Part shown: piece by piece, positions 29,685 to 62,775 of the stretch
How the letters are laid out: each line of letters starts with the position of its first letter
Position numbering within the stretch: the stretch's first letter is position 1
Sequence record: MN988522.1
Strand: one strand, 5' to 3'
DNA length: 64,000 bases
Program-made: the position numbers and the translations under genes
Notes under the pieces: model-generated
Told to the model about the DNA's origin: nothing
Database searches by the model: none
The model's input: the letters and a program-made list of their open reading frames with translations, nothing else

Positions 29685-29702
29685 CGAGGATAAATCATAG
29701 AT

Positions 29703-30416: not shown

Positions 30417-30422
30417 TACTCT

Positions 30423-30460
30423 AAGTAGTAGCTTCGTACCAGCGGAGCTACTACTTTTCA
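30423..30460 (+). terminator. Intrinsic terminator
   Basis: AAGTAGTAGCT/AGCTACTACTT stem followed by TTCA. Confidence 0.7.
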
Positions 30461-30486
30461 TTAATCTGGTAATCCTAGAGGGTTAA

Positions 30487-31524
30487 ATGTTTAAATATTT
30501 CGGTGGATCGTTCATTTTCGCAGCTGCAGCATTGATTGGACTGTATCTCTTTACAGGCAATCCTGCTGCTCTAGTGACAGCAGTTGTCCTCTCGATCGTA
30601 GAGGTAGCTGTTAGCTTCGATAATGCTATCGTAAATGCATCAATCATGAAGACGATGTCTCCTTTCTGGAAGAAGATGTTCGTTACAGTCGGTATGTTGT
30701 TTGCAGTAGGATTCATGAGACTATACTTCCCGATTCAGATCGTATCAGCAATTGGAGGTATCTCACTTCATGAAGCTGGTCATCTAGCTCTTGCTGAGCC
30801 TGATCGATTCTCTCACATTCTTATCGAGTCTCATCACATCGTAGCTGGGTTTGGTGGTGCATTCCTTATGCTCGTAGCTTTGAAGTACTTTATCAATGCT
30901 GAGAAGGATGTCCACTGGGTACACGCTATTGAAGCACCTCTAGCATCTCTCGGTAAGCTTGATGAAGTCCAAGTTCTGATCGTAGCAGTTGTATCGTATA
31001 TCCTTTCTCGCTATCTCGGAGATCATGGTACAGAGTTCTTCTATGCTGCTTTGATCGGTATCGGTACACATATTGTAGTTGATCTGATCAAAGAAACTCT
31101 GAGTCATATCGATACGTTTCTTGCTAAGGGAGCAGATGTAGCAGTCAAGGGTGGTCTTGGTGCATTCATCTATCTTGAAGTACTTGATGCATCCTTCTCG
31201 TTCGATGGAGTCATCGCTGCATTCGCTATCACCAATCAGATTGCAGTTGTAGCTGCCGGTCTTGGTATCGGTGCTATGTTCGTACGTAGTCTGACTCTCA
31301 TGCTTGATGACAAGGATACTCTCACAACTTTCCGATATCTTGAGAGTGGTGCATTCTGGGCTATCGGTGGACTTGCTGCATTCATGTACATCAGCACACT
31401 TGTACATGTCTCAGAGTGGATTATCGCAGGATTCTCTGCTGTAGTCATTCTCGTATCGTTCCTACATTCGATTAAGGCTAACAAGGATGAAGAACTCCTA
31501 CAGCCTGTCCTCGAAATTCATTAA
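30487..31524 (+). CDS. DUF475 / TerC-like integral membrane protein
   Basis: EVAVSFDNAIVNA, GMLFAVGFMRLYFP, YLEVLDASFSFDGVIAAFA, GAMFVRSLT, YLESGAFWAIG. Confidence 0.92.
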   Translation: MFKYFGGSFIFAAAALIGLYLFTGNPAALVTAVVLSIVEVAVSFDNAIVNASIMKTMSPFWKKMFVTVGMLFAVGFMRLYFPIQIVSAIGGISLHEAGHLALAEPDRFSHILIESHHIVAGFGGAFLMLVALKYFINAEKDVHWVHAIEAPLASLGKLDEVQVLIVAVVSYILSRYLGDHGTEFFYAALIGIGTHIVVDLIKETLSHIDTFLAKGADVAVKGGLGAFIYLEVLDASFSFDGVIAAFAITNQIAVVAAGLGIGAMFVRSLTLMLDDKDTLTTFRYLESGAFWAIGGLAAFMYISTLVHVSEWIIAGFSAVVILVSFLHSIKANKDEELLQPVLEIH

Positions 31525-31553
31525 CATTAACTCCTAGATAAGGATTTGGAGAA

Positions 31554-32138
31554 ATGATCGTGCTCGACCTCAATAAAGACGCAGGTATCGTACTGGATCT
31601 CAGCAAGGAAGATCCGTCTCTTGAAACTCTCAAGATCAAGCTGGACTGGAATCCTCATCCAGTTCATGGTGCTAGCCTGACGGATGGCTTCGATCTGGAT
31701 ATCTTCGCATATGTTCTCAATGAACAAGGTAAGATCACTAGCGGTTCTGATGTTGTATTCTTCAACAACAAGAATTTCGCTAATGGTGCTATTGTTCTTC
31801 CTAAGGACAACCGTACTGGTGAAGGTGATGACGATGAAGAATTGCTCATCACCACGTCTAAGATTCCTGCAGACAAGAAGTCTGTAGCTATCTATGTGAC
31901 CATTCACAAGGCTACAGAACGTGGTCATCACTTCGGTATGGTATCTGGAGCATCTCTTCAGTTCATCAATGCTGACTCTGGTAAGATTATTGCCAAGTAT
32001 GACCTGACTGCCAACTACTCTGGTAATACTGCATTCTTTGGTGGTATCCTTTCTGTTGAGAATGGTAAGGGTAAGTTCCAATCGAATGGTGAGGCAGCAG
32101 ACGCTGATCCTAATCAGATCGCTCAGTTGTACGTCTAA
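31554..32138 (+). CDS. terD: TerD-family stress protein
   Basis: LDW...FDLD...VVFFNN...DNRTGEGDDDEE...HHFGMV. Confidence 0.92.
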   Translation: MIVLDLNKDAGIVLDLSKEDPSLETLKIKLDWNPHPVHGASLTDGFDLDIFAYVLNEQGKITSGSDVVFFNNKNFANGAIVLPKDNRTGEGDDDEELLITTSKIPADKKSVAIYVTIHKATERGHHFGMVSGASLQFINADSGKIIAKYDLTANYSGNTAFFGGILSVENGKGKFQSNGEAADADPNQIAQLYV

Positions 32139-40958: not shown

Positions 40959-43214
40959 ATGGATCTCAATAAGTTCAAAGTAACTATCGGTGGTAAGTCT
41001 GTCAATGTGACCGCATTCACTCCTGACACTACAGCTACCAAGGCTGCAGGTAAGACTCACCATGTCCTTCTCATCGACCGTTCCGGTTCGATGTACTCCT
41101 CGATCAGTTATCTGATTGATCAGGTTCAGAATACAGTTAAGCTCATCGGTCAAGACGATCTGATTAGCATTCTCTGGTTCTCTGGTCAGGGTAGTAAGGG
41201 AGTTATCTGCCAAGGTGTTAAGGGATCTGAGGACATTACTACTGTTCTCAATAAGTTCCGTAGCGTTCTTGGTACGACATGCTTCTCTGAACCTCTCGCA
41301 GAGTCGACTAATGTTGTTGCTATGTACAAGGACGTTGTTGATCAGTCCGTTATCACTCTCTTCACGGACGGTTGCCCAGTAGTCAGCTGGTCTACTAAGG
41401 AAGAGACTGAACGTTGCCACGAGATCATTAAAGATCTCGTTGATGATCTCAATGTCTCGGCAGTCAATACCGTAGGTTATGGTAACTACTACAATCGTGA
41501 TTTCTTGCAGACTCTTTCCGAGGCATCGGATCAGGGGATGTTCGTTCACAGTAGTAAGATTGAACAATTTACTGACGTCTTCACCTCAGCAGTGGAGGTC
41601 GCCAGTGGTCTGGTACTTCAGTCTCTGGACATCGAAGTATCGGATGACGACGCTGATATTCTTTACGTAGGTAATGGTACCAGTGGTCTTCACAAGTCTG
41701 ACCTCAGCATGCGTCGTCTTGACAAGTCTCGTAACCTTGTCTTCATCGTATCTGAGAATTCCAAGTACGATCTGACGATCAACGGTGTTACGGATCACAA
41801 GATTGAGTCCATGACTCAGTCCTCGAATCCTGAATTCGTTGAGAACTTCCTCTACTCGTATGCAGATTCTCTCTACTATCGTGGAGAACGTCAGAAGGCT
41901 CTTGACATTATTGTCAACAATCTTCGCGACAAGCATCTCGCAGATCTGATGATGAATGCATTCACCATCGACGAAGTAGCTGATGTTCAGAAAGCTCTGA
42001 ACATTGCATGTGAGTTCAAGTCTGAACGTTACATCAGTGGTAAGTGCGGAGTAGGATACCTTCCCAAGAAGGATGCATTCTGCTTGATGGATCTCTTTAA
42101 TCTGTTCTTCAAGAAGGATGTAACCGCATATTATGTCCCATTCTCGAAGAATGTTGAGGAGTACCAGCGTATCGGTCGTAAGGTAACCGATGAATTCAAT
42201 CTGTTCACCAAGTCTCCTGAAGAAGTTATCGTACCACTGAACGACTTCGTCTGGAACAAGGACAAGCTGAATCTCTCGATCCGTATTCTGATCCCTGGTA
42301 CAGTAACTCTCAATCCGAAGGCTGCTAAGACAGTAGGACTTGCTTCTACCTATCCGTCCAAGATCTATCGTAACCATACGTTTATCAAAGACGGTCAGCT
42401 GAATATTAAGACTGCAGAATTCCTTCTGTCGTCTGATGTACTTGAAGTACTTAATGCGAATAAGATCGGTAACCGTATCCTGTCTACGGATGAGGATGTT
42501 GGTGGGATCCTTCTGAATCGAGTAGTAGTCGATCTCACGAAGCTTCCTGTTATCAATCGTCTTTACATTGATAACTCCGACTCTCTGGATGATCTGAAGG
42601 ATATTGTCGTCAATATCTCTAAGGCTGAGGCTTCCATCAAGGTAGCTAAGGATGCACTGGCAACCGTTCTGGCATCGAATGTGAATCTGACGAAGGTCGG
42701 AGCATATAAGGGTCTTACGGCTGATCAGATCACCGTACTCGAAAATCACGGTATCTCCAAGGATGGAGTCTACGGAGGTATCGATAATGTCAAGCCTAAG
42801 GCTGCGGATTCAGATAGCTACGAAGTACGTACTCTCGAATTCTATCTGAAGGGATTCTCGTCGCTTCCTTCCATCGCTGACTTCAACAAGATGCTCAATG
42901 GTGAGAAGAGAGTGAATGCTCCTGGACAAATGATGATCGACTATCTGAAGGATCTTGAATTCCGACTGAAGGCCGAGAATCTTAGTCTGAATCAGCCGAA
43001 TGCAGCTGTTAGAGACTTCCTTAATGAGGAACTCGAAGAGCTTAAGGCTGGCCTAGCTACTGCTCGTAATCATCTCAATGCTGTCAAGATGGCTAAGGTG
43101 CTTACACATGACTTCTTCCATGGTCTAGTTGCTGACGACAAGGGTAACTACTCTTATGGAGATGAGAATCATACTATGATTCTTCGTAATGACCGTACTG
43201 TAGAGTACGTTTAA
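40959..43214 (+). CDS. Large vWA (MIDAS) domain protein
   Basis: LLIDRSGSM, GTTCF, LFTDG, VGYG; long C-terminal region of unknown fold. Confidence 0.85.
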   Translation: MDLNKFKVTIGGKSVNVTAFTPDTTATKAAGKTHHVLLIDRSGSMYSSISYLIDQVQNTVKLIGQDDLISILWFSGQGSKGVICQGVKGSEDITTVLNKFRSVLGTTCFSEPLAESTNVVAMYKDVVDQSVITLFTDGCPVVSWSTKEETERCHEIIKDLVDDLNVSAVNTVGYGNYYNRDFLQTLSEASDQGMFVHSSKIEQFTDVFTSAVEVASGLVLQSLDIEVSDDDADILYVGNGTSGLHKSDLSMRRLDKSRNLVFIVSENSKYDLTINGVTDHKIESMTQSSNPEFVENFLYSYADSLYYRGERQKALDIIVNNLRDKHLADLMMNAFTIDEVADVQKALNIACEFKSERYISGKCGVGYLPKKDAFCLMDLFNLFFKKDVTAYYVPFSKNVEEYQRIGRKVTDEFNLFTKSPEEVIVPLNDFVWNKDKLNLSIRILIPGTVTLNPKAAKTVGLASTYPSKIYRNHTFIKDGQLNIKTAEFLLSSDVLEVLNANKIGNRILSTDEDVGGILLNRVVVDLTKLPVINRLYIDNSDSLDDLKDIVVNISKAEASIKVAKDALATVLASNVNLTKVGAYKGLTADQITVLENHGISKDGVYGGIDNVKPKAADSDSYEVRTLEFYLKGFSSLPSIADFNKMLNGEKRVNAPGQMMIDYLKDLEFRLKAENLSLNQPNAAVRDFLNEELEELKAGLATARNHLNAVKMAKVLTHDFFHGLVADDKGNYSYGDENHTMILRNDRTVEYV

Positions 43215-47954: not shown

Positions 47955-49901
47955 ATGACTGAATCAATTTCGATTATGACGCCACTCCAGCAGATGTTCC
48001 ATCGTCGTGGTATGTACATCGGTGGCGCTGAGAATCCTGAAATCCTAGCTAAGGAACTTATCGATAACGCACTCGATGAACTCCTCTGCGGTTATGCCGA
48101 TCGAATTGAATTCGATTGGGATCTCAAAGAAGGATGGTTCAGGATTCGAGATAATGGTAGAGGCATGCCTCTATCTCAGTTCCATACTGAAGATCAGGAC
48201 ATGTCTGGATTGAATGGAGCTATTCAGGCTCGTCTTCTCTTCACTCGACCATTCTCGTCTGGTAAGTACGACAAGAATAACTACAAGTATTCGTCCGGTA
48301 CGAATGGTGTAGGTATCAAGGCAGTCAACGTTTTCAGTACGAAGACTGAAGTACGTGTCAAGGATAAGAAGCTCGTTCATAATGGCGATCTGTATCATCT
48401 CACTCTTGGATGGACTGAGCCAGAACGTGTCCAGACAATTGATGAGCAGTGGATTGATGCTAGCACGATTGAAGACTTCTGGTGGTCTACTGAAGTCAAA
48501 TGCTATCCGAATATGGAAGTCTTTAAGACGATCAAGTGCAAGATTCGTGAGACTCAGCTTCAGCTAGCTAAGACTTCGAAGCCTACCTGTAAGATCGTTG
48601 TCAATGGTGAAGAGATCAAGCCATTCTCATTCCGTGAGAGTGTTACTAATGATCTCCTTCTGAATAAGACTTTCAAAGTCAATGTCACGGTTGGATATAC
48701 CAACTTCGAGATTGAACTTGGATGGTCCTCTAAAGATTTCAATTCCTACTATCGTGGAGCAGTCAATCTTGGTTCATGTAATGAAGGTTGGCATATCAAG
48801 GAGACCAAGTATGCAGTAGGTCGAGTACTTGCTGGATATGATGATCTGTTGACTAACTCGGATGCCGAGTACGGTCTCCGTATGTTTATCAACTGCCTGA
48901 TCTCTGAACCGATCTACACTTCTCAGACCAAGGAGAAGTTAGCTGGTGTGACTGACTTCGATGTATTCAATGAAGCATTGATGCGTAAGAAGTATGCCGA
49001 TCTTATCGAGAAGGATGAGAACGGTAGAGAGAATGTCGTCAAGGCTAAGGAAGCAGTCAAGAATGATCCTGAATTCCTGAAACCTGAGTTGCTCTATGCT
49101 GCTATTCAGAAAGCTGTCAAGAAAGAACTTGACCAGGATGAATCGTTCAAGACAGTTCTTGTTAAGAGAATTGTTGAGTACAAGAAATCTGTCCAGAAAC
49201 TATCTGAGCAGAGCTTCATCAATTCTATCGTTAAGACTGGCAATCATAAGATCGCTAGAAATTCGGTAGTAGGTATCAAGGAAGCAGGGTCTGCTGATCG
49301 TGCTAAGTGCGAACTCTTCATCTGCGAAGGTAAGTCTGCAGAAGGTAATCTTCTTCAGAAGAGAGATCGTATGTTCCAGGCAGTCTTCCCTCTTCGTGGT
49401 AAGCCATTGAATGCTGCCAATGTGAGTGACATCAAACAGATTCTTGAGAATCGTGAGATGAAGACTCTGGTCAACGGTATCGGTGCAGGTATTCTTCCTC
49501 AGGTCGATCTTACTCATGCTCGTTATGGTAAGTTGATCATCCTTACAGACGCTGACCCAGACGGTAAGAATATTGAAGCTCTCATTATCGGAGCTCTCTT
49601 GTTCTTGAATCCTAAGGTCATTGAAGCAGGTATGCTATATACAGTAGCTGCTCCTCTGTACAAGCAGGATGGTAAGCTTCTATATTCAGAGAAGGATCTG
49701 AATATGAAGAAGAAATTCAAGAGATTCAAAGGTCTCGGATCGATGATGGCTGATGAACTTGAAGCTAGTGCTCTGAAGTCAACTACACGTAAGCTACGTC
49801 AAATCACATTAACTGAAGCTCGTGAGAAAGCTCTCGAAATCATTACTTCTTCTCACGAGAAGAAGCGTATTATGACAACCAATAAAATCCTAGTCGAGTA
49901 A
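47955..49901 (+). CDS. Type IIA topoisomerase B subunit (GyrB/ParE-like; ATPase and TOPRIM in one chain)
   Basis: ELIDNALDE, DNGRGMP, GTNGVG, EGKSA, PLRGK, TDADPDG, RFKGLG. Confidence 0.95.
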   Translation: MTESISIMTPLQQMFHRRGMYIGGAENPEILAKELIDNALDELLCGYADRIEFDWDLKEGWFRIRDNGRGMPLSQFHTEDQDMSGLNGAIQARLLFTRPFSSGKYDKNNYKYSSGTNGVGIKAVNVFSTKTEVRVKDKKLVHNGDLYHLTLGWTEPERVQTIDEQWIDASTIEDFWWSTEVKCYPNMEVFKTIKCKIRETQLQLAKTSKPTCKIVVNGEEIKPFSFRESVTNDLLLNKTFKVNVTVGYTNFEIELGWSSKDFNSYYRGAVNLGSCNEGWHIKETKYAVGRVLAGYDDLLTNSDAEYGLRMFINCLISEPIYTSQTKEKLAGVTDFDVFNEALMRKKYADLIEKDENGRENVVKAKEAVKNDPEFLKPELLYAAIQKAVKKELDQDESFKTVLVKRIVEYKKSVQKLSEQSFINSIVKTGNHKIARNSVVGIKEAGSADRAKCELFICEGKSAEGNLLQKRDRMFQAVFPLRGKPLNAANVSDIKQILENREMKTLVNGIGAGILPQVDLTHARYGKLIILTDADPDGKNIEALIIGALLFLNPKVIEAGMLYTVAAPLYKQDGKLLYSEKDLNMKKKFKRFKGLGSMMADELEASALKSTTRKLRQITLTEAREKALEIITSSHEKKRIMTTNKILVE

Positions 49902-49903
49902 CA

Positions 49904-50803
49904 ATGAACGATTTTAATGTAATCCTTACAGGTTCTGCTGGTTACATTGGAAGCATCGTTGGCGATCGTCTACTGAAATCCAATTCGATTGATTTGGAGA
50001 CAGTAGACGTCGTCTCTGACGTTCTTCCAGTAGATACTATCTTAACTGAAGTTGGTAATCTATCCAACAAGTCATCTGATGTCCTTGTTCATCTTGCTGC
50101 AAAGATCTCAGTAGTCGAATCTCATAAGCAAGCTCGTCAGTACTACGAGAACAATTGTAGTCAATTCCATGAGATGTTGAATGATCGTGGTAACTATTTC
50201 AAGCATGTTATCTATGCATCCTCTTTCTCGATTTATGATTCTGATTTGAGTATCTATCCTCAGTCTGTCTATGCATCCACCAAATACGAAGGTGAATGGA
50301 TTCTCAAGAGATGGGCTCAGATGACGAATCGAGATTATTCAATCCTACGATTTGCCAATCCAATTGGCGTTAGTCAATCACTTCACTCTCATATTGCAGA
50401 CCGTATTCAATCGAGCTATGCTAATGTTATGTGGAGACTTGCTCGATGCAAATTACTAGGTGAGATGTTCTACATTCATGATCTACCTGGTATGACACGT
50501 GATTTTTATCCCGTTGAATGGATTGGATACGCTATCGATTGGATCGCGAAGAATGGTCCCGTAGGTACTGTAAATCTAGGTAGTGGTAAGCCTGTATCGG
50601 TTATGGATCTTCTTCAGCATATCTGTGAGAAGTATAATATCAGTTACAAATATGTTCTACCACCTGAAGGTACTGCTCTAGGTATTACCAAGAAGGTTGA
50701 TGTATTCAAAGAAGGTATTCCTGATTTTGATACATACGATCCAGTTGTATATTGTGAGAAGTCGTTTTTAGATTATCTATCGTTGATTCAGAACGCGAAC
50801 TAA
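49904..50803 (+). CDS. NAD-dependent NDP-sugar epimerase/dehydratase (GalE-like)
   Basis: TGSAGYIGS, HLAA, YASS, YASTK (YxxxK), LRFANPIG, TRDF, NLGSG. Confidence 0.9.
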   Translation: MNDFNVILTGSAGYIGSIVGDRLLKSNSIDLETVDVVSDVLPVDTILTEVGNLSNKSSDVLVHLAAKISVVESHKQARQYYENNCSQFHEMLNDRGNYFKHVIYASSFSIYDSDLSIYPQSVYASTKYEGEWILKRWAQMTNRDYSILRFANPIGVSQSLHSHIADRIQSSYANVMWRLARCKLLGEMFYIHDLPGMTRDFYPVEWIGYAIDWIAKNGPVGTVNLGSGKPVSVMDLLQHICEKYNISYKYVLPPEGTALGITKKVDVFKEGIPDFDTYDPVVYCEKSFLDYLSLIQNAN

Positions 50804-50821
50804 CGCTAGATTAGCCTTCCT
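50795..50821 (+). promoter_or_regulatory. Promoter-like motif copy 13
   Basis: GCGAA at 50795, GCCTTCCT at 50814. Confidence 0.7.
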
Positions 50822-50830
50822 TCTCGTAGA

Positions 50831-51031
50831 ATGAATAAGAGGATCACCATGAAAGATCTACGTGAATTCAAATCTAAGCTTGATGCTAAGTTCGATACTC
50901 AGACATCTTGGGGTAAGAATCAGATCAAGCAAGTCATCAATGATACTTATATTGAAATCATTGAAAGTAAAGTAGAAGGTACTATCGAGCAGTCGACTCC
51001 TTCTAATCGTATCGACGAAGACTCTAAGTAA
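50831..51031 (+). CDS. Hypothetical protein
   Basis: ORF track; start possibly at the second Met after AGAGG. Confidence 0.55.
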   Translation: MNKRITMKDLREFKSKLDAKFDTQTSWGKNQIKQVINDTYIEIIESKVEGTIEQSTPSNRIDEDSK

Positions 51032-51053
51032 TTTTCTAGTCAAGGTTAACAAT

Positions 51054-52241
51054 ATGAATTTTCTTTATATCACAAGAAGCATTGATCCGCTAGCTGCTGA
51101 TCATCGTCCTGAAGCATATGATCGTTATCGATTCTATGCTCCGATGATGTCACGACTAGCTGAGATCGGTGGAGGTGACGTCTACCTTCAGACTCGTTAT
51201 AATCCTAAGGATTATCGTCCTGGTGGTACGATTGAAAGAATGGAAAGAAATTTCCGTCTTCCTAAGAAGTACAAGACTGGTGATAAGATTGATATGATCG
51301 TATGTGCCATCTTCTGCCCAGACGATGACATTACATTCAATGAGGATCTGAACAAGTTTCGTCAGACTCTTGAAGATACAGGTGCTCCGTATATCTATCA
51401 TGACTCTGACAAAGAATTCTCTACTCAGGACGATCAGCAAGATCTTTTCCATCCAGGAAATAAGAACTATTTCCTTCAGACAATATCTAAGCTTCCAGAG
51501 GATGATATTCTCCGATCCCGACTACGCTGCGTGGCTACGTCGGTTCCGGATGCAGATTATCATCAGATTCTGAAGGATAATCTCAAGGTCGATGTAACGT
51601 ATCTACCTGCTACGTTCTGGGGAGACTGGAAAGATAAGTTTGGATACACTCCTCTTTCAGATCGTAAGTACGATCTGACATTCCTTCGTGACTTCTATCT
51701 GAATCCGAAGCGTTCAGTCATTTTGAAGAATCTTGGTACTGGTGTATCGGATATCAGTGTTCTTCTTGGATCTCGTAGTGGCGACCCTTCTAGTCGTGGA
51801 GGATACATCAGCCATAAGGTTCCGACGATTGATTTTGATCAGATGCGTCAAGGAGCTACGTACAATGATCTATCGAAGTACATGTCTAAGTCTCGTCTGA
51901 CTCCGTCTACGAGTATTTATATGCGTGTCACTTCTAAGCTATTCGAAGCAGCTGAGAGTCGTACTCTAGCACTACTCTTCTCTCCGTGCTTCTATTCAGA
52001 CGTAGTTGATCATCCTTCTGAGGCAGATGCTTATCTGAGTCAACTTGCTCTTGTAATTCCAGGATCCACTACTGTAAGTCAGTTGATTACACGTATTCGT
52101 AGTCTGACTGATGAAGAATACTTGAAGCTTGTTGAGGTTCAGGATAAGCTCGTTGAGACTGTATTCAGTATCAAATCTGATTACATCACAGGCAAGCTGA
52201 CCAAGATCATCACGGATTATGTAGGTAATGTGAATGGCTAA
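51054..52241 (+). CDS. GT-B fold glycosyltransferase (T4 BGT/CgeB-like)
   Basis: RKYDLTF, YNDLSKYMSKS, VTSKLFEAAES, QLITRIRSL; matches the C-lobe layout of GT-B enzymes as I recall it. Confidence 0.55.
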   Translation: MNFLYITRSIDPLAADHRPEAYDRYRFYAPMMSRLAEIGGGDVYLQTRYNPKDYRPGGTIERMERNFRLPKKYKTGDKIDMIVCAIFCPDDDITFNEDLNKFRQTLEDTGAPYIYHDSDKEFSTQDDQQDLFHPGNKNYFLQTISKLPEDDILRSRLRCVATSVPDADYHQILKDNLKVDVTYLPATFWGDWKDKFGYTPLSDRKYDLTFLRDFYLNPKRSVILKNLGTGVSDISVLLGSRSGDPSSRGGYISHKVPTIDFDQMRQGATYNDLSKYMSKSRLTPSTSIYMRVTSKLFEAAESRTLALLFSPCFYSDVVDHPSEADAYLSQLALVIPGSTTVSQLITRIRSLTDEEYLKLVEVQDKLVETVFSIKSDYITGKLTKIITDYVGNVNG

Positions 52242-53112
52242 TGTTCTAGTTACTCTCATTACCAATCGACCAGATATTTCTTCGGAACGATGGATCGGTA
52301 CCATCGGAAAGCTATCTAAGCTTTCCGAGTACCATGATATGACCTACTCGATTCTTCTACAACCTCCTTTTACAGTAGAAGACTGTGATAAAGTTCGTTC
52401 TCGAGTAGTTGAAGCACTCGGTCCTAAGAATCAGGTAGTCGTAGAGCATTTTATTAATCCTCCAGGTCCATTCAATTTTAGAACTGCTCGAAATCAGGCT
52501 ATGTTGAATGTACCGTATCTGAATACTTTTGACTACGTTCTTATCACTGACGATGACTTCAAGTTCAGTGGTCCTACTCCTAAGGGATATGACTCATGGG
52601 AACGTTATCATCAGGCTATTAAGTATCTCGATGAAAACCGTCGATGCGGTGGTGTATTAATCAAAGGTATGTTTGGATCTCCTCCAGTCGATAAGGGTGG
52701 AAATGAGGTATCAAAGGTACATGACGAGTACTACTCGACCAATCGAGGCATTCTTCATCGTAATGTGATGAAGTACGATAACGTAGATTGGATCTACTCA
52801 AATGAATGCTTCGATTATCCTTCTGCTCTCGAGGATGCAGCAGCTTGTTTCTCTCGAATTGAGCTCGGCTACTATTATGCTCGTATCTGGAAGTCACCCA
52901 CCACACCTCTTCCTGTGAAGCAGACATGTGCTGATGACATCCCTGATGACAATATCTACTCGCGACATATGGTCAATGAAGTAGGTATTGGTAAAGCTAT
53001 CCGTGAACGTTACGACGATCCTACATGGGAAGTCGATCAGAAGCGTATGCCTAAGAAACTCAACAATCTTAAACTCGAAGCCATGAACAATCGTGGATGG
53101 GTTGTAACCTAA
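52234..53112 (+). CDS. GT-A fold glycosyltransferase
   Basis: RTARNQAM...YVLITDDD (DxD) and LEDAAACFSRIELGY. Confidence 0.7.
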   Translation: MANVLVTLITNRPDISSERWIGTIGKLSKLSEYHDMTYSILLQPPFTVEDCDKVRSRVVEALGPKNQVVVEHFINPPGPFNFRTARNQAMLNVPYLNTFDYVLITDDDFKFSGPTPKGYDSWERYHQAIKYLDENRRCGGVLIKGMFGSPPVDKGGNEVSKVHDEYYSTNRGILHRNVMKYDNVDWIYSNECFDYPSALEDAAACFSRIELGYYYARIWKSPTTPLPVKQTCADDIPDDNIYSRHMVNEVGIGKAIRERYDDPTWEVDQKRMPKKLNNLKLEAMNNRGWVVT

Positions 53113-53676: not shown

Positions 53677-54642
53677 ATGAAAACTGTATTAGGTCTTGAT
53701 CCTGGGTACGGAGACTTCAAGGTATGCTTCGGTAATTCTAAAGGGATTATCTCTAAGCTATACAAGTTCAACTCCGTACTAGGTCGTGTTGATGTCAGTC
53801 AACATATCAACGATACTCGAGTTTATGGATATAAAGGTACGACCTACTATGTAGGTGAGATGGCCTTGAAACTTGAGTCATCTCGAATCATCGACTTGAT
53901 GTCTTACAACAATCTGGAGACATTCTCTCCTCTCCTGATTGAACATGTCATCAATGAACTAGGAGAAGTTCCAGATATCGTCGTATGTGGTCTTTCGATC
54001 GCTCACGTTGACTATTCAGGATACTATCGAGATGCGATTCTTAACTATCTTGTTAAGGAGAAGAATCTTCCAATCAAGGATGTCCGCATCATCCCACAAG
54101 GTGTAGGTGGTAAGTTAACGTATGACAAGTATGGTCGTACATTCCCTGCCCTCACATCAGAATTCAGTGATGACAACAACTATGTAGGTTGTGATATTGG
54201 ATTCAATACACTCGATGTATTCCATGTCATTCAGAACAAGGTATCTCCTAACTTGATTAGAGGTATTGAGAGTCAAGGTGTAGTCAAGATCGTAACTCGA
54301 CTTCTTGAGTATATCAAGAATGACTACAGTCTGGAGTTCTCTGTTAAGGAAGGTAAGAACATCCTTGATAATGGTCAATTTAAGATCCGTGGACGTGAAT
54401 TTGATGTCACCAAACAGATTGAAGTGATCAAACGTTCTTATCTTGAAGAAGTCAAGGAACTCATCGAGAATGAATTCGGAGCAGTACTTGACAAGGTCGA
54501 GAAGATCAAGATGTTTGGAGGAGGTTCATATCTCTTCAATACGATGAATGACTCCTTCATCGAAACTCCAGAATCTCGTGCTGAATACTATAATTCCATC
54601 GGGAATTATCTACATGGCTTGACAATTGTCGAGAAAGATTAA
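53677..54642 (+). CDS. ParM/StbA-family actin-like ATPase
   Basis: GLDPGYGDFK (phosphate 1), IIPQGVG, GCDIGFNTLD (phosphate 2), FGGGS (adenosine). Confidence 0.9.
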   Translation: MKTVLGLDPGYGDFKVCFGNSKGIISKLYKFNSVLGRVDVSQHINDTRVYGYKGTTYYVGEMALKLESSRIIDLMSYNNLETFSPLLIEHVINELGEVPDIVVCGLSIAHVDYSGYYRDAILNYLVKEKNLPIKDVRIIPQGVGGKLTYDKYGRTFPALTSEFSDDNNYVGCDIGFNTLDVFHVIQNKVSPNLIRGIESQGVVKIVTRLLEYIKNDYSLEFSVKEGKNILDNGQFKIRGREFDVTKQIEVIKRSYLEEVKELIENEFGAVLDKVEKIKMFGGGSYLFNTMNDSFIETPESRAEYYNSIGNYLHGLTIVEKD

Positions 54643-55064: not shown

Positions 55065-55793
55065 ATGGCTCGTTGCTATGTAGGATGTAGTGGATTCTCG
55101 TATAATCATTGGAATGATAACTTCTACCCTGCAGGAGTAGAGCGGTTTTCATTTTATACGAGTCAATTTGATTCATTAGAGATCAATAGTTCATTCTACA
55201 GATTACCTAGTGCAAGCGTATTCTACTCATGGTATCGACGATCACCTGCTCATATGACATTCACTGTGAAAGCTCCTCAGACGATTACTCATCGTAAGAA
55301 GCTAAAGGATGCTGACGATATAGTTCAGAGATTCTATGAGAATACTCTTGAGCTAGGTGACAAGATGAAATGTGTCTTATGGCAGTTACCTCCTAATTTC
55401 TCCATAAGAATGTATGATCGTGTCAAGAAATTCTGTGACAGTATTCATAACAGATTTCCTAATTCAGCATTCGAGTTCAGACATCCTTCATGGATGCAGA
55501 CTCACGTACCTCAACTTCTATCTGCATACGACTTTGAGTTTGTACGTACAGATTTTCATAAATACGTAAATGTATCCATGGATGGATCCTCGTCTAAATT
55601 CCAGTACTATCGATTACATGGACCTACAGGTCAGTATCACGGTCGCTACACTGATGAGTTTCTTGAGAATATAGCTGATCGTCTAACGGATGGATCATTC
55701 GTATTCTTCGATAATGATAGTGGAGGTCAAGCTCCTAGGGATGCTAAAAGATTAATCAAAATTCTAGAGACAAGAAATGAAATTAAATTATAG
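55065..55793 (+). CDS. DUF72-family TIM-barrel protein
   Basis: YVGCSGFSY..W...FYP, EINSSFYRLP, KAPQTITH, LWQLPP, EFRHPSW, YYRLHG, FFDND. Confidence 0.93.
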   Translation: MARCYVGCSGFSYNHWNDNFYPAGVERFSFYTSQFDSLEINSSFYRLPSASVFYSWYRRSPAHMTFTVKAPQTITHRKKLKDADDIVQRFYENTLELGDKMKCVLWQLPPNFSIRMYDRVKKFCDSIHNRFPNSAFEFRHPSWMQTHVPQLLSAYDFEFVRTDFHKYVNVSMDGSSSKFQYYRLHGPTGQYHGRYTDEFLENIADRLTDGSFVFFDNDSGGQAPRDAKRLIKILETRNEIKL

Positions 55794-56322
55794 AGCATAT
55801 GCAGGAATTGGATCAAGAAGTACTCCTCCACATATTCTTGAATTTATGAGAATTCTAGCATTCAAGCTTGGATCTCAAGAAGATCCGTGGACTGGTCGAT
55901 CAGGTCACGCTGATGGTGCAGATGATGCATTCGAAGTAGGTATGGAACAAGCTAATGGACCTATGGAGATCTTTCTACCGTGGAGAGGTATGGCTAACAG
56001 TCGATGTAAGAGTGATTCTCCGTATTACGAAATCAAAACAATTGCTTACGATCTAGCTTCTAGGATTCACCCTAAATGGTACGGATTAACTCATGGAGCT
56101 AAGAAACTTCATGCTAGGAATACTTATCAAGTCTTAGGTTACGATCATCAGACTTGGAGTAAAGCTGTTGTATGCTATACTTCTGACGGTCTACCGATTG
56201 GAGGTACTCGTACAGCGATTAAGATAGCAGAGATGCACGGTATTCCGGTTATCAATCTAGGTGATCCTGAGTGTAAATACGAAACTCCTGATCAAGTTGT
56301 GGAATATTTAAACTCTCTATAG
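55777..56322 (+). CDS. SLOG-superfamily (DprA/Smf-like Rossmann) protein
   Basis: YAGIGSRSTP, RSGHADGADDAFE, IFLPW, HARNTYQVLG, GGTRTAI. Confidence 0.8.
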   Translation: MKLNYRAYAGIGSRSTPPHILEFMRILAFKLGSQEDPWTGRSGHADGADDAFEVGMEQANGPMEIFLPWRGMANSRCKSDSPYYEIKTIAYDLASRIHPKWYGLTHGAKKLHARNTYQVLGYDHQTWSKAVVCYTSDGLPIGGTRTAIKIAEMHGIPVINLGDPECKYETPDQVVEYLNSL

Positions 56323-56378: not shown

Positions 56379-57287
56379 TTGAGAGAATTCTATATTAAGG
56401 AATTCTTGAAGCTGAATGAGACTGTAGACTTGAGATATCTTAATAAGTATCTAGACGTTTGTTTAGGTACTTATGACAAAGACGTTAAATGTGAATATCA
56501 TCACGTGCTACCTCGATCAATCTTCGTCGAACACAAGGAGAATCCTAAGTTCGTAGTAAGGATATCGTTAAAAGCTCATTATCTAGCTCATAGAATTTTA
56601 ACTAAAGCCATACCTAATAATGTTCAGATGAAACATGCACATTATTTTATGTCTCATACTGAAAGATATAAAGGATTTGTGACTAGCAGAGTTTATGAGG
56701 TACTTAGAGAATTTCATTATCAGAAGAACTTAGGTAATAAGTATAATCTAGGTAAGAAGAACTCAGACGAGACTAAACGTAAACGTACTGTTAGCTGGAA
56801 GAAATCTGTAGAAGCTAATCCTGAAGGCATGAATAAATTCTTAGAAAGAAATTTCGGAAATAAACATGCTCAAGGATGTAAGTGGATGCATAATCCTACT
56901 ACAGATGAAACATCTTTAATACCATCTGATAAAATCCAGTCGAGACTATCTGAAGGATGGATATATGGTCGTAAATCCATAGTTGGACGTAGATGGAAAA
57001 TGTCAGATCAAGGTAGAAGAAATGTGTCGGAGTCCAAGAAAGGATCTACTCAGTCTGATTCTACTCGTCAAAAGAGATCTGAAGCTCTAAAAGGGAATAA
57101 AAATTCTCTTGGTTATAAACATTCGTCTGAAACTTCTAGAAAATTATCTGATAAATTAAAAGGTAATAGTCGTACAAAAGGTTACAGATGGATGAGTTGT
57201 AATAATGTAAATAAACTTGTAGCTCCTGATGAATTTAATCAATTGAGTTTATCAGGATGGAAATTCGGAAAATCTAAGGTATCATAG
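56379..57287 (+). mobile_element. Free-standing HNH homing endonuclease with NUMOD-type DNA-binding repeats
   Basis: EYHHVLPRS...LKAHYLAHRIL; repeated S.ETKRKR / WMHN / GW..G units; AT-rich; TTG start. Confidence 0.85.
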
Positions 57288-58190
57288 ATGTTTAACCTCA
57301 AAATTGATAATCCAAACTTGCACAGTATTCTTGAATCTCTGAGTGGGAAAAATATTGATTATTTTCACAATAATGGGAATTCAGGAGATTCAATAATATC
57401 GGTTGCAGCATATCAAACATTTGATAAGTTTGATATTAAAGTTTCGGCTTACAATAAACCTCGTGCTCATAAACAAACTAGTGACACACTCTTCATAGCC
57501 GGAGGGGGAAATCTTGTATCATATTACCCTGACTGTGAACGAGCTATCAAAGAGGGTATGAAGAAGTACGATAAAATTATTGTCCTTCCTCACTCTATCC
57601 GAGGTAAAGAAGAACTTCTCAAGAAGATGGATAAAAGGTTCACAGTCTTTACTCGTGAAGTTCCATCTCATGAATACGTTAAGTCGATGGTCAGATCGGA
57701 CGTAACTGTTCATCTTGAACATGATATGGCTTTCTTCATGGATGTAAAAGCTATCTTTGAAGATCCTACGATCAATGAGAAAGCTAATAAATTCTACATT
57801 AATAAACTTCGATCAATCGGTCGAGGTCCTGAAGATGTTATTGGCAAGGATAATTACTGTTTCCGTGAAGACGTCGAAGCAGTTGTAGAGGTTAAGTCTT
57901 CTCAGAATGTCGATATCTCTCATCTGTTCGAAAGAGGATTGGATCGTACGAACTCTTTCATCGCTGCTAATGCATTTCTAAAGTACATTGATGCTTCAAA
58001 GTCAATTACTACAAGTCGTCTTCATACAGGCATTGGTGCAGCTATGTGCGGTACTCCTGCTACGGTATTTGATAATTCATATGGCAAGATTTCTAGTATC
58101 TACGAATTCTCAATGAAGGATCGTGGATACAACTTCCGTGTAGGTCTCATTGATGAAATGAGATCAATTATCGAACGAATTGAGGACTGA
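57288..58190 (+). CDS. Polysaccharide pyruvyltransferase family protein
   Basis: GNSGDSII, AGGGNL, IVLPHSI, FTRE, HDMAF, TSRLHTGIGA, DNSYGK. Confidence 0.85.
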   Translation: MFNLKIDNPNLHSILESLSGKNIDYFHNNGNSGDSIISVAAYQTFDKFDIKVSAYNKPRAHKQTSDTLFIAGGGNLVSYYPDCERAIKEGMKKYDKIIVLPHSIRGKEELLKKMDKRFTVFTREVPSHEYVKSMVRSDVTVHLEHDMAFFMDVKAIFEDPTINEKANKFYINKLRSIGRGPEDVIGKDNYCFREDVEAVVEVKSSQNVDISHLFERGLDRTNSFIAANAFLKYIDASKSITTSRLHTGIGAAMCGTPATVFDNSYGKISSIYEFSMKDRGYNFRVGLIDEMRSIIERIED

Positions 58191-59250: not shown

Positions 59251-62200
59251 ATGTCAATTAATTCCAGAGACTACGCTCCGTTATTATCTTATGCTAAGAT
59301 GCTAACGTCAAGACTGTCTACTATTCCAGACGTCACGATGATTGGTAACTTTGCTAAGACTCCTCCTAATCTTAATGTCTTTCAAATTAAGCCTACTCTG
59401 ATCCGATTCGGTACTGATCTTCTCATTCAAGGTGACAAGTCAGATATCGTACTCGGATCTAATTATCTTGCTGCTCATCCTAAGGATGAATACGAAATCC
59501 TCGAATATGAGGATCCTAGCATCGCTGCACGTCGATTCGAGAGTACATGGGGTATGACTCTTGAAGAGTATGATGACCATGTTAAAGTTCTGAATACGCA
59601 AGTAGCTACTGTCAATAACGAAAGTTATGTCCTAGATGAGGAGACGAAAGCTAAGATGTCAGATGCATCAGACTTTCTCACACGATGGATTAGAATGTTC
59701 AGTTCTAAGACCAACAAAGCACCACTGCTAGTTGGTCATTCAGGTATCTCGAAATCTGCATTCGTTAAGGAAGTTATATCTCGTCTAGATGCTCAGTCGA
59801 CTGAATGGGGATATCGCCTCGTTGACATTCGTGCTGCTTATCTTGATAAGACTGACCTCATGGGTTACATCTCTGTCGAGAGTTTCAAGGGTAATGATGT
59901 ATGGACTGACTCTCCTAAGATTGAATTCTTGACATCTACATCTGAGTTCATCAAGGAGTGCCGTAAGTTCGTTACGACTACTCCTCGTGATGATGACAAC
60001 GGTGAGATGTGGGATATCGTCAAGGAATATTCCAAGACACCTGTCCTCTTCTTCGATGAAATCAATCGTGCACCTGCTTATATTCAAGCTCAGGTCATGA
60101 TCATCATCAACCAGCATCGTCTGAACGACTACTCGCTGGATCTCGCTCCTAAGATCGCTGCTGCTAACGTACCGATTGATATGGAAGATCTTGATGATAC
60201 GCAGAAAGAACTGATCAAGTACGTTCTGCAGGATGAGATCACCGATAAGGCAATCATTGACCGATTCATTCCTATAGAAATCAAAGGTAAGGATAAATCT
60301 GTTATTGATGCTACGTATTCATATCTCACCAGAAGATATGCTACGAGTGGTGCCAGTATGGACCTTCTTGAGTCTGTCTACAAGAAGGGTAAACCTCTTC
60401 ATGACATCACGACAATCGATAAGTATGGTAAGTTCAGATCACACCGTGGTCTAGAATTTGTATGTACGTACCTGTCAGGTTGTGAAGGCGCTAAAGAGAA
60501 ACCTATGCTATCAGTGATCAAGTCACTGATTGGTGAGAATGCTACGGATGATTATGTAAGTTATCTTGCTGAGAAATTCAAGACGACTAAAGAAAATCTC
60601 TCTAAGAAGATCTTTGATCTGAATGAGTCAACTTCCAAGTTTACAGCTCATTGCATCAAGTTCAATATTCCTACGATGCTACTAGGTCGTATGGGTATTG
60701 GTAAGACTGCTAAGATCAATGCTGCTACGAAAGAATTGGATGCTGATGTTATCAACATCGATCTTTCCTCGAGAGATCGTACTGATATCAGTGGATTCCC
60801 GAGTCAGTATTCCTTTGCTCAGTATATCTTCAGCAAGGGTGGTCAGAATGATGATCTAACAACATCCTCCGCATTCAGACAATTTGAAGCTCAACTAGTT
60901 AACAATCCTAATGTTCCTAAGAAGACAACTGGATTCGTAGGTAGTGGTACTCTTACTCGTCGTCTGGATGAAGCTAGAGCATCTGGTAAGAAACTAGTTA
61001 TTGTATTCGATGAGATCAATCGTGCATCTCCTATCGTCCAGTCAGCCGTCTTTGAAGCAATCTCTGATAAGCGATTCATGGGTGTATCTCTAGAAGGTAT
61101 CGACTACTCTGTCGTATCTGCTGGTAATTGGGAAGATCCTAACGAGTCTTCAGGTAACTATCAGGTTACACCTCTTGATACTGCTACTCTTCACCGATTT
61201 GCATCTCGAGTCATCGATAAGATGACAGAAGACGATATCGGAGAAATGAGAGACTTCATCAAGACAACGTATCCGAATACTTACTCTGCTCTCAATATGG
61301 GTCAGATGAGTAACAACGATATCGTTCAACTCCTGAATACTTCTTCAGATGAAGATGATAACGCTGAGCCAGGTACTGAATGGGCTAGACCCTCATTCTC
61401 GATGCGTACATTCCAGTCTCTGAACGAGATCCTGGATATGTATAAGTTCGTCTGGACTCAAGAGATGACGGTAGATGAATCGGACGATATCGTCAAGGTA
61501 CTCGAATCACCTAACTACATTCTCCGTGATCGTGCAGGTGAAGAAGTTACTCTGAGAACATCAGGTATAAAGAAGTACTTCCCGAGTCTAGTAGTTGAAG
61601 ACTTTATCGCTAAAGCTGCTCAGATGCTGGGTGACGATAATGTTTCAGTCCTCGATAAAAGTATGATTCTTGCAGAGCTTCAATACAATGAAGTCACTGC
61701 ATATCAGTCACTTGAGAAGGCTGTCCGAGGAGTCATTCCTGGATCAATGCTTAAGCATATGAGATCAGGTCTTCGTGTATACTATACGGATCTGAGTAAG
61801 GCTTCAGTAGGTGCTGTTGATCTTGATCAATTAGTTATGGAACTCTCGGATAATGAAATCCGTAAGGTTCTAAACAAGATGATCTCAAGATCTGAGGCTT
61901 CGAAGACTAATGACGTTATCAAGAGTGCTATCATTGCTCTTGGTCAGGCTAATGAGATCTCTGTCGATTATATTAACAAGATTCTCAGTCTGTACAAGTC
62001 AGTAGTTCCAACATCTACGATCAGTCTTGTTGATATCTTGAATCAGATTCCAGACGAGAATATCGTAAGTGGAGGGTCTGAGATTGTATTCAACTTCATA
62101 GATCTTGCTGCATTCCCTGAACGTGATGTCATCTTACAGTCAGGTTCTGTCTCAGTAGGTACACCAGTTTCGACTAATCCTACTGATTATAAGTTCCTAG

Positions 62201-62775
62201 GCTACTTGAAGGTTCCACTTGAATTTGGGTCTGTTAATCTTGGATCTAAATATGAAAAGGATCAGAGACTTTACATTCGAAATATCATTCCTAACTGCTT
62301 CAGAATCATCTGTAATGCTGATGCATTACAAGCGTACTATCGTTATGAGTTTACGATTTCTGATGCATTCTGGAAGATCGACACTATCAAACCTTCGACT
62401 AAACGATTTGAATACAATGTCGAATACGTAGCGAAGATTAAAGGTGTCAGCTTCAGAATGAAGATTGATAATATTCGTCATCCTGTAGCTCATAAGGATG
62501 GTGATCTGACTAAGCCTCTGACTAAGGATACAATTATCCAACGTGATACGACAGTCTTGTCAGGTATGCTGGCTACACAAGCAGTAGTATCTGACTCTTC
62601 TGTTAGTAACTTGACTAAGAATCTATCAGACGTTCTGACGGATGATGATATCACAATCATCAAAAGTACAGTGATGAAGAAGAAGGCAGATACTGCCAAG
62701 ATGTCACTCACTAATGACTATATGCAACTCATCCTTGTCGGATGGCGTAAAGTCGAGCCTAAGTTCTCATTCTAA
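59251..62775 (+). CDS. Tandem AAA+ ATPase (two MoxR/dynein-related modules) with long C-terminal region
   Basis: Module 1: GHSGISKS, DLMG, FFDEINRA, IIDRF. Module 2: GRMGIGKT, DISGFP, VFDEINRA, SAGN, TLHRF. Confidence 0.88.
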   Translation: MSINSRDYAPLLSYAKMLTSRLSTIPDVTMIGNFAKTPPNLNVFQIKPTLIRFGTDLLIQGDKSDIVLGSNYLAAHPKDEYEILEYEDPSIAARRFESTWGMTLEEYDDHVKVLNTQVATVNNESYVLDEETKAKMSDASDFLTRWIRMFSSKTNKAPLLVGHSGISKSAFVKEVISRLDAQSTEWGYRLVDIRAAYLDKTDLMGYISVESFKGNDVWTDSPKIEFLTSTSEFIKECRKFVTTTPRDDDNGEMWDIVKEYSKTPVLFFDEINRAPAYIQAQVMIIINQHRLNDYSLDLAPKIAAANVPIDMEDLDDTQKELIKYVLQDEITDKAIIDRFIPIEIKGKDKSVIDATYSYLTRRYATSGASMDLLESVYKKGKPLHDITTIDKYGKFRSHRGLEFVCTYLSGCEGAKEKPMLSVIKSLIGENATDDYVSYLAEKFKTTKENLSKKIFDLNESTSKFTAHCIKFNIPTMLLGRMGIGKTAKINAATKELDADVINIDLSSRDRTDISGFPSQYSFAQYIFSKGGQNDDLTTSSAFRQFEAQLVNNPNVPKKTTGFVGSGTLTRRLDEARASGKKLVIVFDEINRASPIVQSAVFEAISDKRFMGVSLEGIDYSVVSAGNWEDPNESSGNYQVTPLDTATLHRFASRVIDKMTEDDIGEMRDFIKTTYPNTYSALNMGQMSNNDIVQLLNTSSDEDDNAEPGTEWARPSFSMRTFQSLNEILDMYKFVWTQEMTVDESDDIVKVLESPNYILRDRAGEEVTLRTSGIKKYFPSLVVEDFIAKAAQMLGDDNVSVLDKSMILAELQYNEVTAYQSLEKAVRGVIPGSMLKHMRSGLRVYYTDLSKASVGAVDLDQLVMELSDNEIRKVLNKMISRSEASKTNDVIKSAIIALGQANEISVDYINKILSLYKSVVPTSTISLVDILNQIPDENIVSGGSEIVFNFIDLAAFPERDVILQSGSVSVGTPVSTNPTDYKFLGYLKVPLEFGSVNLGSKYEKDQRLYIRNIIPNCFRIICNADALQAYYRYEFTISDAFWKIDTIKPSTKRFEYNVEYVAKIKGVSFRMKIDNIRHPVAHKDGDLTKPLTKDTIIQRDTTVLSGMLATQAVVSDSSVSNLTKNLSDVLTDDDITIIKSTVMKKKADTAKMSLTNDYMQLILVGWRKVEPKFSF

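Follow-up and report, generated by a model that had tools for sequence, protein, structure and literature searches.

The window analysed here is a 64,000-nucleotide stretch of the genome of Rhizobium phage RHph_TM40 (MN988522.1), and our subject is a group of plus-strand genes at its positions 49904-53112, encoding a divergent sugar-nucleotide epimerase, a near-orphan protein and a predicted glycosyltransferase, which may serve to put sugar on the phage's own DNA. The window corresponds to bases 62001-126000 of the record, its first 24 kb being 100% identical to bases 62001-86000. RHph_TM40 has a 207-kb genome and belongs to the genus Cuauhnahuacvirus, family Kleczkowskaviridae. Annotation was taken from the RefSeq record of phage TM30 (NC_070966.1), which is 97-100% identical to the window. 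The 3.2-kb region under study showed 100% identity in TM40, TM30 and TM2_3B, and 95-99.8% in seven other Cuauhnahuacvirus records.

The region begins at the end of the gene for a GyrB-like topoisomerase II large subunit (47955-49901; Pfam Toprim, HATPase_c and DNA_gyraseB_C; PHROG 543, 1.5e-83), 2 nucleotides past whose stop codon the 299-residue epimerase gene starts (49904-50803). A copy of a repeated, promoter-like intergenic motif follows (50790-50822), and the first gene 3' of it is a small open reading frame (ORF) of 60 residues (50849-51031), present both as an ORF and as a RefSeq coding sequence (CDS), for which no family match was found. Next come the genes for the near-orphan protein of 395 residues (51054-52241) and for the 292-residue putative glycosyltransferase (52234-53112), which share an 8-nucleotide overlap suggesting coupled translation. 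All these genes lie on the plus strand in the arm of the genome that holds the replication genes, far from the structural genes, which are on the opposite strand. An earlier analysis made from the letters of the window without database searches (hereafter the sequence-only reading) had proposed that the three larger genes form the core of a seven-gene DNA glycosylation system. Its placement of the genes, with the 2-nucleotide gap behind the topoisomerase gene and the overlapping pair, was reproduced, and the peptides it had quoted were found in the translations. It was also right that the proteins are devoid of transmembrane segments, the maximum Kyte-Doolittle 19-residue mean being 1.15 across the locus, below transmembrane strength, and that genes for surface polysaccharide export are missing: at the level of annotation, the whole genome of the near-identical TM30 has no flippase, polysaccharide polymerase or transporter gene.

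The glycosyltransferase gene and the company of its relatives

The 292-residue protein encoded at 52234-53112 had no match in Pfam, PHROG (at E<=10), NCBIfam or the sequences of the PDB. A profile search recovered 28 relatives, none of them named and none with a recognised domain, and Pfam at E<=1 gave a glycosyltransferase family match in 0 of these 28 family members. The fold was approached through an AlphaFold2 model computed from the family alignment (mean predicted local distance difference test score, pLDDT, 81.4; predicted template-modelling score, pTM, 0.83). Foldseek returned 76 PDB matches at E<=1e-3, and the best 50 of these 76 were all glycosyltransferases of the GT-A fold (probability 0.97-1.00, TM score 0.45-0.58), with AvpGT, a Leptospira glycosyltransferase, TarS, TarP, RmlT, GnT-I and glycogenin as best matches. 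The top match, AvpGT, is a nucleoside 3'-O-glucosyltransferase (E 2e-7, TM score about 0.45). A structural search of BFVD agreed with this GT-A picture. In the model, the residues DDD (106-108) stand right after a strand formed by residues 101-105, the position expected of a DxD-type motif; D106 and D107 never vary among the 28 relatives, at least 90% of which also keep D108, some having N instead. As modelled, the gene encodes a GT-A-fold glycosyltransferase of a phage-only family that lies outside the curated libraries, and the enzyme is predicted to be soluble, with a DxD-type metal and nucleotide-sugar site.

The GT-A call of the sequence-only reading thus stood. The landmarks of the T2/T6 glucosyltransferases that it had recognised in the same protein were not borne out: PHROG stayed empty at E<=10, no T-even phage was returned when 50,697 phage records were searched by tblastn at E<=1, and the T2/T6 beta-glucosyl-hydroxymethylcytosine (HMC) alpha-glucosyltransferase did not appear in the 50 best structural matches from BFVD. 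A T2/T6-like assignment was thus rejected.

The principal new evidence came from the genes next to the relatives. Genes were listed for 11 loci (L004-L006, L008-L011, L017, L026, L027 and Streptococcus phage GXN1), and in all 11 the relative stood among genes of nucleotide or DNA metabolism, none of the loci being a structural or polysaccharide locus. On the metagenomic phage contigs L004, L007, L008 and L017 the order comprised a gene for the flavin-dependent thymidylate synthase ThyX, a Methyltransf_11 gene, small genes, the relative, a DnaE-type polymerase, RecA and a 5'-3' exonuclease, and the polymerase beside the relative carried a C-terminal uracil-DNA glycosylase (UDG) domain. Contig L027, which is Pam3-like, has the relative tightly packed between a flavoprotein gene and ThyX. 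Phage GXN1 presents an HD protein, a ThyX-like gene, a PolA polymerase with a UDG domain and an intein, then two ORFs and the relative, followed by two annotated glycosyltransferases and a nucleotidase; a tblastn search with the GXN1 relative recovered itself alone. Inteins were seen in UDG-fused polymerases of both types, at L007:9497-14308 (DnaE type) and L019:2140-7788 (the 1882-residue PolA type of GXN1).

On contig L026, the relative (33% identity to the transferase, E 2e-21) belongs to a cluster in which an amino-acid:DNA transferase (PF18724, 59 bits) and a 5-hydroxymethyldeoxyuridine (5-hmdU) DNA kinase (PF18748, 52 bits) are followed by a 92-residue ORF, the relative, a GNAT-like gene and a pyridoxal phosphate (PLP) enzyme. 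The kinase and the amino-acid:DNA transferase are hallmark genes of thymidine hypermodification, and both families act on DNA polymers (PMC8989533). A distant homologue was also found in Cobetia phage Carin-5, whose gene #179 matched the family profile (hhalign probability 96%, E 4e-9) and lies in a block of sugar and glycosyltransferase genes two genes away from the DNA polymerase gene. Mass spectrometry has shown the thymidine of Carin-5 to be hypermodified with oligosaccharide as in SP-15 (PMC12686479).

Across lineages, the features that go with the transferase are a ThyX-family gene and a replicative polymerase bearing a UDG domain, and TM30 itself has the two. Outside the window, its PolA (gp339, 1109 residues) combines an N-terminal UDG domain (residues 46-193, 8e-19) with DNA_pol_A and matched the Carin-5 polymerase in BLASTP at 5e-29. 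TM30 has been listed among the SP-15/YerA41-like ('RP13-like') phages, its polymerase resembling that of YerA41 (PMC12686479).

Epimerase, near-orphan protein and other genes of the window

The product of 49904-50803 matched Pfam Epimerase (2.1e-15) and PHROG 540, 'nucleotide-sugar epimerase' (2.3e-25), and its translation keeps both GxxGxxG and YxxxK intact, the hallmarks of an extended short-chain dehydrogenase/reductase (SDR). The best NCBIfam model was that of GalE (TIGR01179), with a score of 65 bits where the equivalog cut-off is 262.3; heptose epimerase and dehydratase models of NCBIfam also matched weakly, and the GalE structures in the PDB did so at 1e-6 to 1e-7 only. The epimerase call of the sequence-only reading therefore stands at the level of the superfamily. 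Distant homologues, of 23-29% identity, were found in other Rhizobium and Agrobacterium phages, among them (at 23-25%) 150-kb Agrobacterium/Rhizobium phages which we take to be Pootjesviridae. As far as its sequence allows one to say, the gene encodes an intact, highly divergent GalE-like extended SDR to which no substrate can be assigned.

The 395-residue protein (51054-52241) is nearly without relatives. Pfam, PHROG, NCBIfam and PDB sequences yielded nothing (Pfam, PHROG and PDB even at E<=10), PDB phmmer and PDB profile searches were empty, and no relatives were present in IMG/VR, the JGI metagenomes or the GTDB genomes. A HMMER pass over 1.8 billion representatives gave four proteins at E<=1e-3, including the query's own cluster; the one clear homologue (P0002, 45% identity) is encoded on a 2.7-kb metagenomic contig, and two more are weak. 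Beside the weak relatives lie genes for a WbqC-like protein and an acyl carrier, which hints faintly at sugar tailoring. An AlphaFold2 model built from 5 sequences had a pLDDT of 52.6, with alternating beta and alpha elements in the N-terminal 185 residues, suggestive of a Rossmann-like half, and values below 50 in the remainder. With this poor model, the best Foldseek match was HepE, a GT4 enzyme of the GT-B fold (E 0.014, probability 0.69, TM score 0.30), the others being generic Rossmann folds. The protein is possibly two-domain and GT-B-like, and the GT-B call of the sequence-only reading was not confirmed.

The landmarks of T4 beta-glucosyltransferase (BGT) noted in the same protein also found no support in a direct comparison with T4 b-gt, which was taken from NC_000866.4 (accession shown in PMC11404850): hhalign of the family alignment (A4) gave a probability of 0.15%, and BLASTP an E of 0.53 in a non-collinear alignment with the domains out of order. 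With the library and PDB searches empty as well, kinship to T4 BGT was rejected at the level of sequence. Carin-5 #174 and #178, the two annotated glycosyltransferases of GXN1 and the PS_pyruv_trans protein of the window were likewise discarded as kin (hhalign probability <=1.1%).

The motif that separates the epimerase from the overlapping pair has its core, GATTAGCCTTC, at 50809-50819, with a GCGAA-like box about 10 nucleotides 5' of it; its general form is a GCGAA-like box, about 10 nucleotides and then [GA]AT[TA]A[GA]CCTTC. Cores occur on the plus strand at 2861, 8443, 11615, 14388, 23541, 26702, 32833, 35304 and 50809, and related copies lie 5' of at least 8 other plus-strand genes of the window, among them those starting at 8489, 11658, 14429, 23615, 26769, 32875 and 35382. 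With 2 mismatches allowed, 33 matches were observed against 18.5 expected, a count reached in 0 of 100 shuffles. The motif is nearly missing from the minus strand, which suggests a phage-specific promoter class, and it probably acts as a promoter. Of the claim that a promoter copy lies between epimerase and pair, the repeated motif was thus corroborated. Many of the genes 3' of the motif serve replication and nucleotide metabolism.

Three motif-preceded genes, all on the plus strand, had been drawn into the proposed pathway. The gene at 8489-9448 encodes a 319-residue FAD/NAD(P)-binding flavoprotein with a GxGxxG motif, named 'polysaccharide deacetylase' in RefSeq and probably the gene that the sequence-only reading had called UDP-galactopyranose mutase (UGM)-like. 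It had no Pfam match and is no Pfam-recognisable GLF-type mutase; its PDB profile matches covered the dinucleotide-binding N-terminus, plus a weak partial stretch of eukaryotic UGM (E 0.01-0.1), and the UGM-like label was not upheld. The flavoprotein adjoins ThyX in L004, L008, L027, Pbunavirus and Wifcevirus. ThyX itself (11658-12458) matched Pfam Thy1 over the full profile (6.4e-31) and shares 35-42% identity with the ThyX genes flanking transferase relatives. It has RNR instead of the RHR of the family, and this Asn in place of the central His leaves its chemistry not certain; one metagenomic relative likewise deviates from RHR. The gene at 14429-15151 (RefSeq 'phosphoheptose isomerase') encodes a small HAD phosphatase with DxDxT and an extra C-terminal domain, which matched the PDB profiles 2obb (2.4e-10) and 1xpj (1.4e-4) and fell under the cut-off of the NCBIfam models for BT0820-type HAD and capsule phosphatase; its relatives adjoining ThyX carry Pfam HAD_PNKP, and 1xpj is the PDB entry matched, too, by phosphatases from the arabinosylation clusters of RB69 and DLP3. 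These profiles mark it as a PNKP/BT0820-type HAD phosphatase, rather than the pyrophosphatase that had been supposed to remove a canonical deoxynucleoside triphosphate. Both RefSeq names look like misannotations.

By local BLASTP, members of the metagenomic clade have the flavoprotein, ThyX and HAD genes together with the transferase. In Pbunavirus JG024 and Wifcevirus FEC19 the same trio adjoins the DnaE polymerase (of these two polymerases, that of FEC19 was scanned and has no UDG domain), and two protein searches of phage records found no transferase relative in Pbunavirus or Wifcevirus. The trio was for this reason rejected as a signature of hypermodification. In all, 362 phage records hold the flavoprotein, and the trio (loci L023 and L024 besides the window) lies next to the polymerase in Pbunavirus, Wifcevirus and the metagenomic clade.

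Four kilobases downstream of the transferase, 57288-58190 encodes, on the plus strand, a polysaccharide pyruvyl transferase family protein (PS_pyruv_trans over the whole profile, 2.9e-16), a gene that was beside no transferase relative in the loci compared. Between the pair and this gene lie an actin-like protein of the ParM/Alp7A type (53677-54642), unusual in a lytic 207-kb phage as a segregation protein, a DUF72 protein (55065-55793) and a DprA-like protein (55777-56322). Homing-endonuclease genes sit among the functional genes at 56379-57287 and 9445-10098, the former splitting the DprA-like gene from the pyruvyl transferase gene. Elsewhere, the window holds a TelA, vWA, membrane protein and TerD-like cluster (28560-32138), a 751-residue vWA protein (40959-43214) and a 1174-residue multi-AAA ATPase, dynein-related and MoxR-like (59251-62775).

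Within the genus, ten matching records, representing eight phages (TM30 and Y65 appear twice), all keep the near-orphan and transferase pair. In the TM39 record (MN988559.1, L013) a single deletion leaves epimerase and near-orphan annotated as one 677-residue CDS, and in that of TM21B (MN988560.1, L012) one deletion has taken out epimerase and small ORF and cut short both flanking genes. Since these two records are partial and align in 7-9 pieces, the variants may be assembly artefacts and were given little weight.

Two further genes of the phage group deserve mention. TM30 encodes an adenylosuccinate-synthetase homologue, named PurZ-type by RefSeq (gp019, NC_070966.1 10623-11873), and an HD/YfbR-like deoxynucleotidase immediately 5' of the UDG-fused PolA (gp340-gp339, 149183-153183); an Adenylsucc_synt gene is also present on a contig with a transferase relative (L007:1829-3052). 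A PurZ-like gene together with an HD hydrolase suggests that 2-aminoadenine may replace adenine in this group. We found no paper that connects PurZ with Rhizobium phages.

Probable glycosylation of phage DNA and its alternatives

The presence of relatives in thymine-modification clusters suggests that the transferase probably puts sugar on the phage's own DNA, and the lack of membrane segments and of export and polymerisation genes favours DNA over a surface polysaccharide. We consider it somewhat better than even, at roughly 55%, that the segment holds donor-supply and transferase genes that glycosylate the phage's own DNA, most likely at a thymine-derived base. With a nucleoside diphosphate (NDP)-hexose as its donor, the transferase would then attach sugar to the hydroxyl of a modified pyrimidine that is part of phage DNA or will be built into it. 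The GalE-like SDR would provide this donor by interconverting an NDP-sugar (for instance UDP-Glc to UDP-Gal), the near-orphan, coupled in translation to the transferase, would be a second transferase or an accessory subunit, and the pair would be expressed with the replication genes from the phage-specific promoter-like motif. Candidates for making the acceptor hydroxyl would be ThyX with its partner flavoprotein, or a 2-oxoglutarate (2OG)-Fe(II) oxygenase encoded in TM30 outside the window, an enzyme that matched 2OG-FeII_Oxy_3 only and in which no TET/JBP-family domain was seen. Epimerase, near-orphan and transferase are linked by adjacency alone. A wider proposal is quite improbable as a whole: that the phage-only GT-A family writes sugar on thymine-derived bases, here as a galactose-type, perhaps pyruvylated DNA glycan made with the epimerase, the near-orphan and perhaps the pyruvyl transferase, that ThyX and the flavoprotein provide the hydroxyl, and that the DNA may contain 2-aminoadenine too. 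Of the original idea that these genes glycosylate a DNA pyrimidine rather than build a surface polysaccharide, the part concerning the GT-A gene is thus backed by the contexts of its relatives and by the UDG-fused PolA of TM30, and the seven-gene pathway is not.

Several observations weigh against glycosylation of DNA by this locus. The fold does not name the acceptor, the nearest PDB match being an enzyme of free nucleosides and TM scores of 0.45-0.58 applying throughout the best matches. The pair maps to 113-115 kb of TM30 and PolA to 150-153 kb, so that the transferase is adjacent neither to ThyX, some 40 kb away, nor to PolA, at a distance of some 35 kb. ThyX, which the sequence-only reading had cast as a variant providing the chemical handle, passes the equivalog cut-off of TIGR02170 (103.9 bits against 87.9), and the trio to which it belongs, being found in phages without the transferase, is not diagnostic of hypermodification. 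Epimerase, near-orphan and pyruvyl transferase accompany the transferase in no other lineage compared. No known enzyme that makes an acceptor hydroxyl was found in TM30: its annotation shows no ThyA-family gene or dCMP hydroxymethylase and no DNA cytosine methyltransferase, local BLASTP at E<=1e-4 gave no homologue of the L026 kinase or amino-acid:DNA transferase (run over all TM30 sequence but about 12 kb), and the window proteins scanned had no Pfam match to 5-hmdU DNA kinase or amino-acid:DNA transferase. The TM21B record is without the epimerase. Of the ten matching records, seven carry no 'partial' label (4 are complete genomes, 2 of them also as RefSeq copies), in contrast to Carin-5, which yielded a partial genome only, with an optimized Illumina protocol. 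We found no paper with chemical data on Cuauhnahuacvirus DNA, and that on PhiM9 does not mention modification or glycosyl genes.

The same set of genes can be accommodated in other ways. It is fairly unlikely, in our estimate, that the three genes have no common pathway, the epimerase serving as an auxiliary metabolic gene in the topoisomerase operon, the near-orphan not being a sugar enzyme, and the function discussed so far belonging to the GT-A gene only. The promoter-like motif and the small ORF that separate the epimerase from the pair would be explained in this manner, as would the absence of epimerase and near-orphan from the transferase's surroundings in other lineages, the TM21B record, and a near-orphan with no detectable family and a poor model. 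The 8-nucleotide overlap, however, suggests coupled translation, the pair stays together in 10 of 10 records of the genus, and TM39 joins epimerase and near-orphan in a single 677-residue CDS, albeit in a gapped partial assembly. We regard as unlikely that the transferase, with or without the near-orphan, glycosylates virion proteins or a glycan of the host envelope, the epimerase and the pyruvyl transferase making a pyruvylated galactose-type sugar as in rhizobial exopolysaccharides. Kleczkowskaviridae are reported to be unusually rich in carbohydrate-active genes (bioRxiv 10.64898/2026.08.04.742344), the PS_pyruv_trans family protein is encoded 4 kb away, the nearest solved structures work on teichoic acids and glycans, and the WbqC-like and acyl-carrier genes beside the weak relatives of the near-orphan are typical of sugar tailoring. 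Yet the genes belong to the replication arm, far from the opposite-strand structural genes, the proteins have no membrane segments, the TM30 annotation includes no lipid-carrier priming enzyme, flippase or polysaccharide polymerase, and the 11 gene-listed loci of relatives point without exception to nucleotide or DNA metabolism.

That the sugar never enters DNA, the acceptor being a free nucleoside, a nucleotide or a small molecule (for example a nucleotide of host signalling or defence, or an intermediate of the pool), appears very unlikely. AvpGT, the best PDB match at E 2e-7, does act on a nucleoside, and the neighbours of the relatives include enzymes of the nucleotide pool (ThyX, HAD phosphatase, HD nucleotidase); but AvpGT is no better a match than many GT-A proteins (TM score about 0.45), the families next to the L026 relative act on DNA polymers (PMC8989533), and the Carin-5 block is tied to DNA-borne sugars. 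The analysis improves the annotation of three hypothetical or misnamed genes and, under our preferred reading, glycosylation of the phage's own DNA, predicts that agricultural rhizobiophages of this group have modified DNA. A coat of sugar on their DNA is a major protection of phages against restriction enzymes and CRISPR, with consequences for sequencing and for phage engineering.

Comparison with known systems

The closest parallels are the phages SP-15, YerA41 and Carin-5. TM30 shares with them a PolA of more than 900 residues with an N-terminal UDG-like domain, a ThyX-family thymidylate synthase together with a dCMP deaminase, and an HD phosphohydrolase adjoining the polymerase, and the sugar block of Carin-5 holds the distant homologue of the GT-A gene. 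The sugar genes of TM30, in contrast, are not beside the polymerase, and the toolkits differ: a glucose-1-phosphate nucleotidylyltransferase, a deacetylase and glycerol-phosphate enzymes in Carin-5, and a GalE-like epimerase, the near-orphan and a pyruvyl transferase in TM30. Neither Carin-5 nor GXN1 has a counterpart of the near-orphan.

Rhizobium phage RL38JI and other Pootjesviridae carry galactosyl-glucosyl 5-hydroxycytosine (PMC13326640). The Rhizobium host, a galactose-type sugar logic and soluble transferases recruited from cell-wall enzymes are points of likeness to the present case. Their pathway begins with a ThyA-family 5-hydroxy-dCMP (5hodCMP) synthase and employs a true UDP-galactopyranose mutase and GT-B-type transferases (PMC13326640), whereas TM30 has no annotated ThyA-family gene, no Pfam-recognisable mutase and a GT-A enzyme. 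The 5-hmdU kinase clusters (PMC8989533) resemble our case in that a GT-A relative lies inside the L026 cluster, and differ in that TM30 lacks a homologue of the kinase or of the amino-acid:DNA transferase by BLASTP (about 12 kb excepted); glycosyltransferases are not mentioned in the account of these clusters (PMC8989533). With T4 BGT (GT63) and the T2/T6 enzyme the likeness is one of concept alone, namely a soluble phage transferase that puts a hexose on a modified DNA pyrimidine in a setting of replication genes, and no sequence or profile similarity emerged in the PDB, Pfam and PHROG searches.

Post-replicative addition of sugar to a hydroxymethyl pyrimidine is known from the base J pathway, in which a JBP hydroxylase and a glucosyltransferase cooperate. 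The TET-associated glycosyltransferases, which act on 5-hydroxymethylcytosine (5hmC), follow the same logic (bioRxiv 10.1101/2023.12.21.572611). Two entries named 'TET-associated glycosyltransferase' were among the weaker BFVD matches of our protein (E 4e-5 to 6e-5), no closer than generic GT-A proteins. Phage DNA glycosyltransferases are known to derive from enzymes of teichoic acid and lipopolysaccharide (LPS) synthesis (bioRxiv 10.1101/2023.12.21.572611). The presence of TarS, TarP and RmlT among the top structural matches of the TM40 transferase fits such an origin. The DNA sugar writers known so far are the GT63 and GT72 enzymes of T-even phages, the GT-B enzymes acting on 5-hydroxycytosine and the TET-associated transferases acting on 5hmC. 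To our knowledge, the enzymes that glycosylate thymine derivatives in phages of the SP-15, YerA41 and Carin-5 type are still unassigned. An unannotated GT-A family that recurs in unrelated lineages beside ThyX, UDG-fused polymerases and 5-hmdU kinase clusters is a candidate for this missing thymine writer, and would serve as a marker for such genomes in metagenomes.

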